64,000 bases of DNA from positions 817,609-881,608 of the forward strand of contig NW_003314326.1 of assembly GCF_000143415.4 (NCBI RefSeq). Reading direction: 5' to 3'. Both the position numbers and the translations under genes were made by a program. Shown here in pieces: positions 3,049 through 14,933 of the stretch. Origin of the DNA: Selaginella moellendorffii. Lineage: Eukaryota; Plantae; Lycopodiophyta. Under the pieces are notes generated by a model that saw only the letters and a list, made by a program, of their open reading frames with translations, had not been told where the DNA came from and ran no database searches. The stretch's first letter is position 1. Each line of letters begins with the position of its first letter.

Positions 3049-3080
3049 CAAGAAACTGGGAAAAATATCACAAGCAATCT

Positions 3081-3430
3081 AAGTGTGAGGCCTCATGCTA
3101 GTAATTTCCATTAACACATTGTGATTGGACTCATGCTTAAGGATTAGCATGAGGCCTTATGCTAAAGTGCTAAAAAGATTTTGGTTTGTCTAGTTTCTTG
3201 ATGGTAATCTTGCTCAAATGTCTGTCCATGGGACAAGTAATATTATTATCAAGGAATTGGCAAACACACCCCATCCATTCCTAAGTGTGAGGCCTTATGC
3301 TAATAACCTCCTATAGAATTACCTCCACTACCCCTTTCATACACCCCATCCATTCTTGAGTCCTCATGCTATTAACCTCCTATAGAATTACTTCCATTAC
3401 CCCTTTCACTTAGCATGAGGCCTCACACTA
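3081..3430. repeat. Cluster of ~20-bp palindromic motifs TAG(CA/TG)TGAGGCCTCA(CA/TG)CTA
   Basis: Copies at 3081, 3145, 3283 and 3411, with partial copies near 3121 and 3355. Same motif at 14761 and 14847. Confidence 0.85.
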
Positions 3431-4147
3431 GGATCCATTCTCTCCCATTTCAAAAATATTTTAAGTAATTCTAATAAGTTCTTGCCCAGCAATCTAAAAT
3501 ACTTCTACATGAGTCCATCATAGTGAAAAGAGGCTGCAACTCCACACAACCACAAAAGTGGACATTAGAGATACAAGATGATGATCTAGTGTTGGTGGAT
3601 CTTACCAACCCAAACAGTTCAATAGTCTATGGGATTGTCATCAAAGAAGAGGAAATTCCTAACAAAGACATGAACAGGGAAGGAAGGCCATTTATACGGA
3701 GCTTCAAAAGACATTCATTAGGAATATTGTTCAAAACTCAAAGTTTATTCCATCAACTACAATATAGTCTGTAGAGAAGGAATTGATATAACCATCACTG
3801 CTTATGGAATCCTCAAGGACAGACTAACCTTGTACAATCACTATGGACAAGGATGGTTAGATATTTGTCGAAAGGATAGGCAAGGAAACAACAAAAAATC
3901 CAACAGTTAAATTCATTGTTATGTCTAGGCGGCACTTGACAAAAGCAATGCAAAAGATCTCTTCTGATCTAATATACATGAAGAAGATGCAGGCAAAATT
4001 CTCAATATAATACTTCTAAATCATGAAGGGGTTAACACCACAGGATACCATTATTGAGATATCCAATCTTGTGAACACAAAGGCAAAGAACCAGCACAAG
4101 AGTAGCCTCAATGACAAGCTTGTACATAGTCGCCACAACTAGGAGAG

Positions 4148-11779: not shown

Positions 11780-13513
11780 TCTTTTGATCCAAAAAGGAAG
11801 GAAGTAGTGGATATGGCTATAGGATGATTTTTCTGGAACGAGCACATACCATTTGTGAAAGCTCATTCTCACCATTTCAAGGAGATGGTGCAGTAGATTG
11901 CAAGGCATGGAATTCCCTACGATCTTCCAACAGAGAGCATTGCGAGAGCAATTGTTGCAAGTGGAGAAAGCCAATCTTGAAGTTCAACTTGCCAAGGTGA
12001 AGGCACGTTGGAAGAATTGTGGGGTTACTCTTGTTGCTGATGCATGGAATGACACAAGAAATCGACATATCATGGGGGCTTGTTGCATACAGCAGAGGAT
12101 AGTCGACTTTTCTCAAGGCCATTGATATATCTTCTAGTGGGAAGACGGCTGATAACGTTTTTGCAACATGGGAGCGAGGTATCGAGATTGTTGGAGAGGA
12201 GAATGTTGTTCTTATTGTCACGGATGGTGAGGCTTCAAACAAGGCTGCTGCTAGGCTTCTAGAGGTGAGGAAGCCAAAGATTATGTGGGCTCCATGTTTA
12301 GCTCATTGTTTGAACAACATTCTCAAGGATTTCGCAAAACTACCATGGATGGTTGGGCTGCTAGACAAGGGAAAGACTTTGGTTGGCTTCCTCCGGAACT
12401 AGTAACGATTTTGGCATCCTTCTCTTCACGACAAGTGTTGAAGTTCAGCAAAACACGATTCACCTTCAACTTTCTTATGATGGAGAGATTGGTGGAGCTG
12501 AGGCCAAAGCTACAACAAATGTTTGTGAGCAACACTTACAATGCAAGGCTAGAGTCAAGGACAGGTTTTGGGATAGCATGCCGAGGAATTGTGTTCAACG
12601 ATACATACTGGAACGAGGTTAACCACATGCTGGGTGTTTCAAGGAGGGTGATGTATTTGCTACAGATGGTTGACGGAGACGTGCCTGTGATTGGGAAGGT
12701 CTACGAGGGGATGGATCAGATGAGCGAGAACATCTGTCAACAAGAGGAGAACAATCTTAGGTATGAGGAGCTAAACCAACTGATTTCAAACAGGTGGTGG
12801 GCTTATCATAGCACCTTTCACTCCATGGCATACATGCTTGATCCAGAGTTTCAGGGGTGAGGACAGGAAAAATCCAGAGAAGTTTCCAAAGATTGGAACA
12901 TGTACTTGGAGATCCAATTCCCTGACTATCAGCAAAGGTCAACTATAAAAAATCAGCTTTGCCAATACAGGAACTTGGAGGGTAGTTTTGGCACCGGGGA
13001 CTCTCAGATGGATCGTACAACAAAGGGTTCTGTGCAGTGGTGGGAGGACAATGGCTACTCAGGTCCAGATTTGCAGAGGTTGGCAATTCAAGTGCTTAGT
13101 CAGGCAAGTTCTTCCTCATCTGTGAAGCGATTGTTCAACATTTTTGGGCACATCACTTCAAAGAAGAGGAATTGCTTAGCAGTGAGCCGGATTGCAGACT
13201 TGGTATTTGTGGCCAGTAATACCAAGTTGATAGGGAGCCACACTTCCTATGACAAGTTTGTGGGATTGAGTTAGATAGGAAGTATTCCTCAAATTACTGA
13301 TGCTGATATTGAAGCTATGGAAGAAGAGGACGAAGACGAAGATGATGATCCTGCTAATGAGGAGCTTCTAGATGAGATGGAGTGATAAGTAGAATATTCT
13401 AGAGAATATTCGTGTTTTCACCCGTGTTTATCCGTGTTCATTTCCATGTTCCGTGTTCGTGTTCAAAAAATTGAATGCCGTGTTCGTGTTCGTGTTCGTG
13501 TTTTGAAGCTATG
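11780..13513 (+). mobile_element. hAT (DUF659 + dimerization domain) transposon remnant with intact 3' terminus
   Basis: GVTLVADAWND, IVGEENVVLIVTDG, CLAHCLNNILKD, TRFTFNFLMMERL and WWEDNG..PDLQRLAIQVLSQASSSSSVKR, then an acidic tail. Subterminal CGTGTT repeats at 13410-13502 end TTTTGAAGCTATG. Frameshifts and stops present. Confidence 0.92.
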
Positions 13514-14380
13514 CCAGCAGCACCACCCGAGGCAGCAACCACCAAGGGATCTCCAAAAATGCTAAGGGGATTGCTCCCTGCTGTTGAGAGCACCCGCACC
13601 ACCCAGACATCACCACAAAGCTGCTATGATCCACCAGAATCTGCCGTGGGAGACACAATTGCAACTGCAATTGCAAATGCCCGCCTCTGCTTCTCCAGCA
13701 TCCTCTCCACCGTCAGATCTCCCGATCCAACGGTCCACGTGGTCCAAGCCTGAATTGTACTTAGATTTTTTCTGGGCTATGGAGGAGAAAGATGCAAGGA
13801 GCAGTCACGACAGGGCATTCTGTCTTGACCACGCCACACCATCAAGCCAACAGCAAGCCAGGACAACTCCAAGCATGGTTCTGGATTCAGAGAAACCAGC
13901 CATGCTGCCCCTCTCTCCCCTCGCCAGGGTCTGGCACAGCAAGTCTCTAAGCCAGGCATTTGCGTTGGCCCCTGTGTGCCGCACCTCGCTGCCACAGTGC
14001 CACAAAAAATCCCTGCCTGGAGATGCTCACTGCCACTAAGAGTCCGGGAACTAGCCTGGCTTCTCAACACAACAATCTCTCAAAGGCTTTTTGCCCCCTT
14101 TTGGTCCAGTGCCTTGGCACCACCAAGAGATCATAAAAATGCCAAGGGAGCTGCTCCCTGCCACACAGAGCGCCCACACCACCCAGAAATGCTGTCACCA
14201 TGGGAGAAGCCTTTGCAACAGCAACAGCCATTGCAAAGGCCCACTCATGCTTCCCTCTCCTCTCTCCTCCACCGTCAGATCCCACAGATCCAACGGCTCA
14301 AACGCGCAGCCTTTGAGTTGCCAATAACTTCTATAGCACTTAGTTTTTTGGCAATGGTAGAGGAAGCTACAGGAGCATGG
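13514..14380. repeat. GC-rich degenerate direct repeats (~570-580 bp period), partial third copy at 11625-11730
   Basis: TGCTCCCTGC..GAGC.CCC.CACCACCCAGA at ~13572 and ~14152. CCACCGT..GATC...GATC.AAC.G at ~11630, ~13707 and ~14269. Confidence 0.7.
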
Positions 14381-14933
14381 CCATTGCGTCTTGAGCACGC
14401 CATGGCCCATGCCACCATAGCCAGCTGCTCCAGCAGTAGCAGCTGCCGACGTAGGCAGCACCAGCCATCGCAACAGCTTGCAGCCTGCGAGCACCAGCAG
14501 CTACTGCATTGTGGGAGTGATTGAGGCAAGGAAGAGGGACGTCACCAGCTTCACCGGTCCTCCACTTGCTTCACCGGAGTGACTATGGCAAAGGATGAGC
14601 TTTTTTTCTCCTCTTTTCTCTCTCACGGCTTGGTTTTCACTCTTTTTCTCGTTTCGACTTCATGGCTAGCACAATCTTATTCACTTATGCAATAAACATG
14701 CATGCAAAGGAGATTAGTGTCGAGAAACTAGGCTAGAGGAGGTGGGTGGGCTTTTTTTCTTGGTGTGAGGCCTCACACTAATGTTTTTGTGTGCCATCTA
14801 TTTGTAGATTGGATTAAGGTATTATGGAGGGATGAAGTCATTTTCTTGGCATGAGGCCTCATGCTATTCATTTATATGCATTTGTTTCTTACTACTTTAG
14901 GTGTCTAGGTGAGTAATCTTACTCGCCAATTCA

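Follow-up and report, generated by a model that had tools for sequence, protein, structure and literature searches.

An 11.9-kb block interrupts a coding exon of a neprosin gene in the window analysed here, a 64-kb stretch of the Selaginella moellendorffii genome (contig NW_003314326.1); all coordinates are window positions. The exon stops at about 3048 and restarts at 14934/14935. Judged by sequence comparison, the insertion is real and fixed. The two ends of the block, called its arms below, share a palindrome, and the interior is a mosaic of unrelated pieces that includes an intact gene for a protein with a nucleoside triphosphatase (NTPase) domain and a C-terminus resembling a restriction endonuclease (REase). 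The explanation we favour, to which we give about an even chance, is that the block is an old, fixed, non-autonomous element of DNA-transposon type with an end layout like that of Helitron2/Helentron elements, and that its interior consists of passengers.

Insertion into a neprosin exon

The interrupted gene and the junction are located as follows.

2258-3048, forward strand: left half of the neprosin gene, interrupted; last exon piece 3031-3048 encodes ADGYRN; assigned by Pfam Neprosin and by DNA identity to paralogs
3048-3059, forward strand: junction zone with the candidate target-site duplication (TSD) TCA and the alternative TSD TGG
14934-15499, forward strand: right half of the neprosin gene; Pfam Neprosin matches with E values of 6e-12 and 4e-14; translation starts GCYNLHCEGFVQ

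In Pfam profile coordinates the exon is continuous across the gap, with the match of the left open reading frame (ORF) running up to position 53 and that of the right part (E 6e-12) starting from position 53; the insertion proposed by an earlier, sequence-only reading of this stretch is therefore real. Solved neprosins match in the same register across the break, and the break is not an intron because no GT..AG is present there. Uninterrupted paralogs provide the comparison. Two pseudogene paralogs in the window, at 20412-20974 (reverse strand) and 57539-58095 (forward strand), are continuous at the homologous site (ADGYINTGCYNL); DNA identity of the left half to the paralogous stretches at 21115-20412 (reverse strand) and 57398-58095 (forward strand) was about 81%. 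The closer and intact paralogs P0026 and P0050, taken from the protein database and encoded on the same 1.13-Mb contig, are also uninterrupted and read ADGYDKTGCYNL(Q/R)C.

The partial gene models P0051 (contig 1,132,267) and P0049 (contig 981,669) both start exactly at the junction, with (G)CYNLHC, and differ from each other in three residues. By-eye comparison matched P0051 to the right half of the neprosin gene over its full length, and P0001, a paralog of the NTPase-REase protein, and the chimeric model P0025 (both described below) lie on the same contig as P0051. Since models starting at the junction occur on two contigs, the split is present in both haplotypes of the published assembly and is not an assembly artefact of the window.

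Exon by exon, identity of the interrupted gene to P0026 was 100, 78, 100, 85 and 80% in the left half and 90 and 97.5% in the right half. The most fitting reading of this patchwork is gene conversion between tandem copies that fades towards the heterology. It also bears on the alternative, raised by the sequence-only reading itself, that the two halves are different paralogs joined by rearrangement without any insertion. Uneven identity to P0026, 97.5% in the last exons against 80-85% just left of the break, could be taken in its favour. However, some exons of the left half likewise match P0026 at 100%, conversion is patchy on both sides and least next to the insertion, and either flank is equally distant (about 80% identity) from the two pseudogene paralogs of the window. 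The break, moreover, sits at a single point within a single exon, and codons have been neither lost nor duplicated there. Because both halves show the same patchwork to P0026, the alternative was rejected, and we regard it as extremely improbable; insertion of a cargo-carrying block into a single gene, as originally proposed, is upheld by this shared pattern.

At base resolution, the trinucleotide TCA stands at 3048-3050 and again at 14931-14933, and TGG at 3057-3059 and again at 14934-14936. Three parses keep the reading frame. With TCA as a 3-bp TSD, Y-RNH-GC is restored; with no TSD, an element starting T-C and a target site A3047|T14934, Y-RN-GC is restored; with TGG as TSD, Y-RNQET-GC. 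Among 17 relatives, GC is preceded by T, S or G, at a spacing of 2-3 residues. The first two parses therefore have a length within the family range but an unusual residue. The third retains Thr but is too long, and its disputed bases (CAAGAAAC) are an inverted copy of an arm motif. Since those bases belong to an arm motif and the family spacing is 2-3 residues, the TGG junction, which would restore TGCYN, is judged less likely. As for the 3-bp TCA duplication first suggested, the repeat is present and the frame is restored, but this is one of three in-frame parses and its His is atypical. A T is also found on both sides of 3049-14933, as for the Helitron2/Helentron type of insertion at T/TT without target duplication, but that parse breaks the reading frame, and TCA is duplicated. 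The left boundary is placed within 3048-3059 from one copy of the block, with a TSD of 0 or 3 bp.

Two side observations concern the neprosin family. At 2307-2654, two exons of the presumably dead gene are 100% identical in protein sequence to P0026, with the exons between them at 78-85%. Each of the two pseudogene paralogs carries an inversion of about 100 bp (20290-20389 and 58118-58217) covering exon and intron start; its start lies only 20 bp downstream of the point that corresponds to the insertion site, and some 20 bp of exon have gone missing along with it. The proximity may be a coincidence or the scar of an old event at the same spot.

Arms, interior and the NTPase-REase gene

The arms contain the following features.

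3049-4147, no strand assigned: left arm, non-coding; observed/expected (o/e) CpG ratio 0.10; no Pfam match for the arm ORF
3047-3057, forward strand: 11-nt sequence at the 5' terminus, repeated perfectly in inverted orientation at 3192-3202 (local alignment); the pair encloses two palindromes
3081-3430, no strand assigned: left-arm palindrome array, five 20-bp copies at 3081, 3145, 3283, 3352 (degenerate) and 3411
14756-14866, no strand assigned: right-arm palindrome pair, 20-bp copies at 14761 and 14847, each preceded by TTTCTTG; CpG o/e of the right arm 0.23
14908-14927, forward strand: hairpin with an imperfect 9-bp stem and one T/G mismatch, 3-6 nt from the 3' boundary

At no more than two mismatches the 20-bp palindrome gave six matches (3081, 3145, 3283, 3411, 14761 and 14847), against none from 100 shuffles, and a degenerate copy at 3352-3371 brings the number to seven. 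None was found in the rest of the window, which bears out the earlier description of a motif confined to the two ends. The 8-base core GAGGCCTC is present at only four of the sites, and part of the left array (3266-3408) is built on a tandem unit of 69-75 bp. Every palindrome consists of two 10-bp half-sites of the form TAG-(CA or TG)-TGAGG. All 12 half-sites carry CA or TG at the variable position and none carries CG. Alternation of CA and TG is the product of deamination of methylated CpG on either strand. CpG o/e values of 0.10 and 0.23 for the left and right arm stand against 0.62 for the NTPase-REase gene, 0.74 for the CDKAL1 fragment and 0.60 for the window. The CA/TG wobble together with the CpG-depleted arms thus points to an ancestral palindrome with a CpG in each half-site and to arms that were methylated over a long period while the cargo was not. 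Because the palindrome was found only in the two arms and both share the CpG depletion, we assign them to one repeat family.

A perfect inverted copy of the 5'-terminal 11-nt sequence has an estimated probability of about 1e-3 by chance. The heptamer TTTCTTG, related to this sequence, stands directly before both right-arm palindromes (14756 and 14842); three copies fall within about 600 bp of arm, against 15 in the whole window. The hairpin noted near the right end is real but weak (-5.5 kcal/mol, z -2.2). Terminal inverted repeats (TIRs) were not found under any boundary choice by repeat finder, short-word BLAST or local alignment, and neither block end showed a CACTA or CTRR terminus, in agreement with what had been seen by inspection. 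For the 5' AAGAAAC, an inverted match of 7 nt lies at 14884-14890 (17 nt ahead of the hairpin and 40-43 bp short of the end), but it does not exceed what shuffles give.

Between the arms lie the following pieces, the first four of which correspond to the content listed in the sequence-only reading.

4148-6040, forward strand: repeat resembling a solo long terminal repeat (LTR), beginning with TG; 23-bp tandem array; about 80% identity to the LTRs at 43413-45794 and 49528-51254
6480-9149, reverse strand: intact spliced NTPase-REase gene; coiled coil, P-loop NTPase (Walker A GFPGAGKT), REase-like C-terminus
9390-11235, forward strand: pseudogene of a CDKAL1-type (MiaB-like-B) methylthiotransferase; TIGR01578 and Radical_SAM; at least two frameshifts
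11600 (approximate)-13505, forward strand: hAT remnant, 5'-truncated; DUF659 at 11898-12125, hATC at 12900-13274
13506-14700, forward strand: GC-rich region with internal repeats; no Pfam matches

No 5-bp TSD was found around the solo-LTR-like repeat. In the CDKAL1-type pseudogene, TIGR01578 matched at profile positions 127-170 and 261-296 and short GT-AG introns are kept; possible additional exon remnants on the 5' side reach about 9230, which leaves a gap of only some 80 bp to the NTPase start codon. The hAT remnant has nine CGTGTT subterminal repeats at 13411-13502, and a matching AACACG cluster was not found 5' of it. Pfam searches of 20-odd internal ORFs gave only hAT pieces and Radical_SAM; apart from the truncated hAT, the ORFs scanned contained no transposase, and no Rep/helicase domain was detected in them. 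The RefSeq model LOC9648939 (P0025, 270 aa) has its first exon at 14354-14510, within the insertion, and its GT-AG intron (14511-14959) spans the palindromes and the hairpin to land in the middle of the neprosin exon (14960 onward). As a gene model it predicts a chimeric, N-terminally truncated neprosin, so that the right arm supplies the first exon of an annotated chimeric transcript model.

The exons of the NTPase-REase gene are all in one frame and separated by short introns, and its 654-aa ORF (7185-9149, reverse strand) shows 98% identity to SELMODRAFT_446088. The database paralog P0001 (98% identical) stood in for the window protein in folding and alignment. Five database models are 95.5-98.7% identical to the window copy. 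Within the subfamily, P0001, P0004 and the window copy form type I, and P0003 and P0005 form type II; the contigs of the models point to two linked loci per haplotype. The alignment revealed a conserved NSGxD...(E/Q)SK motif, placed on neighbouring predicted strands. The window copy has Asn instead of the Asp predicted to be catalytic (codon at about 6950, reverse strand, SGANTFLIL); the Asp is conserved in all five close paralogs and in the majority of distant relatives, one of which has Glu. The window copy has two further private substitutions, E to Q and R to H. These changes, the Asn included, could be real polymorphism or sequencing error. Throughout the subfamily, the E of the ExK motif is replaced by Q.

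A profile search of 1.84 billion representatives yielded no more than 15 relatives. S. moellendorffii accounts for nearly all of them; the remainder came from a fern, an MMETSP transcript and Klebsormidium, the last with a ubiquitin-like domain. Look-alikes in the Atlas, ranked by feature likeness, comprised red-algal and mucoromycote clusters, one of which is named Crinkler (0.95, rank 20). The Pfam Crinkler family did not match the protein, and searches of the family with PADLOC and a PDB sequence profile gave only coiled-coil and P-loop noise. The AlphaFold model of P0001 is of moderate confidence (predicted local distance difference test, pLDDT, 64; predicted template modelling score, pTM, 0.60). 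Its best Foldseek matches were NB-ARC modules of plant nucleotide-binding leucine-rich repeat (NLR) proteins, CED-4/Apaf-1, Cdc6/ORC and the archaeal ATPase 2qen; those to the REases MspJI and AspBHI were weak.

The protein is read as a putative conflict- or immune-type NTPase-nuclease carried as cargo and not as a transposition enzyme, because in the model it resembles a STAND/Cdc6-type NTPase fused to an effector nuclease, has lost the predicted catalytic Asp, shows normal CpG content and has a start codon abutting an unrelated pseudogene. The earlier suggestion that this gene may mobilise the block is not supported, for the same reasons.

In the wider family, P0001, P0006, P0008, P0010 and P0018 combine a coiled-coil or ubiquitin-like N-terminus with a STAND/Cdc6-like NTPase and a nuclease or kinase-like C-terminus, and several near-identical copies are found per contig in Selaginella. 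By analogy with NLR and bacterial Avs proteins, this architecture suggests a role in immunity or conflict.

Affiliation of the block and competing explanations

Helitron2 elements are defined by hairpins on both ends and asymmetrical TIRs (ATIRs), and include Helitron-5_SMo from Selaginella (Bao & Jurka 2013, PMC3627910). Helentrons and HINEs make no TSD and carry palindromic subterminal inverted repeats together with a 3' stem-loop (Thomas et al. 2014, PMC4067079). In canonical Helitrons, TC...CTRR termini are combined with an A|T target and a hairpin situated about 11 bp inside the 3' end (PMC4067079). The end layout of the block appears closest to the Helitron2/Helentron group. It has no TIRs, palindromes lie near both ends (five at 3081-3430, two at 14761-14866), a stem-loop is placed just inside the 3' end, the 5' end starts with T and repeats an internal sequence in inverted orientation, and host genes have been captured. 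The label "unclassified" in the sequence-only reading was fair, but this known analogue of the end layout had been overlooked. Likeness to Helitron1 extends to the intron-bearing fragments of unrelated host genes, the 3' hairpin and, in the parse without TSD, the 5'-TC start and the A3047|T14934 site.

According to the favoured explanation, an element would have inserted into a coding exon of one member of the tandem neprosin family. The element proper would consist of the two arms with their private 20-bp palindrome, which would most plausibly act either as a hairpin signal or as the site where a dimeric, trans-supplied protein docks. The arms would have been methylated over a long time, and all DNA between them (the NTPase-REase gene, the CDKAL1-type pseudogene, the hAT remnant and the solo LTR) would be passengers.

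Several points weigh against this explanation. Only one copy of the block was examined for its ends. The palindromes occur in arrays, the first of them 32 nt from the 5' end compared with 0-4 nt in Helitron2/HINE elements. A Helitron2 ATIR measures 8-15 bp, with the 5' copy 0-2 bp and the 3' copy 20-30 bp from the end, just upstream of the hairpin; the block has the 7-nt match at 40-43 bp, no better than shuffled sequence, and the stronger 11-nt inverted copy on the 5' side. The target is not T-rich, and no RepHel partner was identified for the block. Compared with Helitron1, the 3' end (...CCAATTCA or ...GCCAAT) has no CTRR, the weak hairpin lies 3-6 nt from the end instead of about 11, and palindrome arrays at both ends are foreign to the group. 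The direct TCA repeat could represent a genuine 3-bp TSD, which rolling-circle elements do not normally produce. Finally, with a solo LTR lacking a TSD and a truncated hAT, the interior could have been assembled before or after insertion.

Membership of known cut-and-paste groups was excluded in three cases. For CACTA/En-Spm, the possible 3-bp TSD, bidirectional subterminal motif arrays near each end, large size and captured genes are points of likeness, but the block has no CACTA or other TIR and no TnpA/TnpD remnants. PIF/Harbinger elements differ in their TWA target, where the block has TCA or TGG as candidate TSDs, and no TIRs are present. For hAT, the junction 8-mers match at 5/8 positions, again without TIRs; the subterminal repeats of the internal hAT remnant end near 13505, far from the block end.

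An unclassified cut-and-paste transposon of CACTA-like layout, with TCA as 3-bp TSD, palindromes as transposase-binding sites and TIRs absent or too short, is judged unlikely. CACTA and hAT elements typically bear arrays of subterminal repeats in the outermost 400 bp, as the block does; TCA stands exactly at both junctions and restores the frame with family-typical spacing. On the other hand, searches for TIRs came up empty whatever the length, CACTA termini are missing and TCA departs from the TWA of PIF/Harbinger. A 3-bp match, moreover, has a 1-in-64 chance and competes with two other in-frame parses, and the restored His is unseen at that position in the 17 relatives. We consider it quite improbable that no transposon was involved at all, and that a genomic mosaic patch was pasted into an exon break by repair or segmental duplication, with the palindromes derived from other repeat fragments. 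The abrupt joins between unrelated interior pieces, such as the NTPase start codon about 80 bp from CDKAL1 remnants, would be expected of such a patch, as would the lack of TIRs, and 3-bp junction identities are also typical of microhomology-mediated joining. But chance would hardly place one rare motif at the two edges and at no other site in the 64 kb, and extreme CpG decay is common to both edges and not shared by the interior.

We attach very little probability to a new self-mobilising class, in which arms and NTPase-REase gene form one autonomous unit and the protein docks on the palindromes and cuts or pastes the block. The gene is the only intact ORF inside the block, a second locus of the subfamily (P0003, P0005) is about 95-97% identical, and the family, present in several near-identical copies, hardly extends beyond Selaginella. 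In addition, a review (PMC5289972) attributes the proposal of a transposon origin for CR NTPase+REase modules to Zhang et al. 2016. Yet the combination of a STAND/Cdc6 NTPase with an effector nuclease is an immune-type architecture, no DNA-binding or integrase-like domain is present, the ExK motif has Q for E in the whole subfamily with Asn for Asp in the window copy, and CpG content and mosaic junction mark an origin different from that of the arms. By analogy, such a unit could be likened to the nuclease-ATPase pairs of TnsA/TnsC type. If it did exist, it would be a eukaryotic counterpart of nuclease-plus-ATPase transposition modules and a living "transposon ancestor" of Crinkler toxins.

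If the block is instead the passenger-carrying element that we favour, it would provide a clean, datable lycophyte case of a TIR-less element that moved a whole, intact conflict-type gene into another gene. It would parallel the association of Helitrons with Crinklers in oomycetes. In Phytophthora infestans, CRN genes cluster with Helitrons in Helitron-rich regions (PMC5289972), which is a suggestive parallel. The cargo protein has the Crinkler/CR order of P-loop NTPase followed by REase-like domain and resides in a transposon-like element; it differs in having a coiled-coil N-terminus instead of a secretion/translocation header and in being encoded by a plant gene, with no sign that the product is secreted. 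The ubiquitin-like domain of the Klebsormidium relative is a further point of likeness, and the putative link to bona fide CRN effectors is the Atlas feature likeness to the Crinkler cluster. Should the arms prove to be of Helitron2 type, they would document whole-gene capture by a little-studied group in land plants and offer a defined 20-bp palindrome as candidate recognition site; should they not, they would represent a new non-autonomous family. Either way, the block illustrates one route by which copies of this NTPase-nuclease family, almost restricted to Selaginella, may have arisen within the genome.

Other features of the window

An inverted duplication of about 10 kb (19860-30662 versus 58627-51783, about 94% identity) contains the neprosin pseudogenes and part of an aspartyl-protease (TAXi) gene; its first copy includes an intact pentatricopeptide repeat (PPR) gene at 23216-25318 and the TAXi gene at 25713-27314. 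The LTR retrotransposon at 43413-51254 has LTRs up to 95% identical, with a complete 5' LTR of about 2.4 kb and an internal region of only about 3.7 kb; the LTRs contain 11/23-bp tandem arrays as well as assembly gaps, seen as N runs at 44352-44545 and 50048-50469. At 29397-29708, about 300 bp match their own reverse complement (73-79%), with ORFs on both strands.

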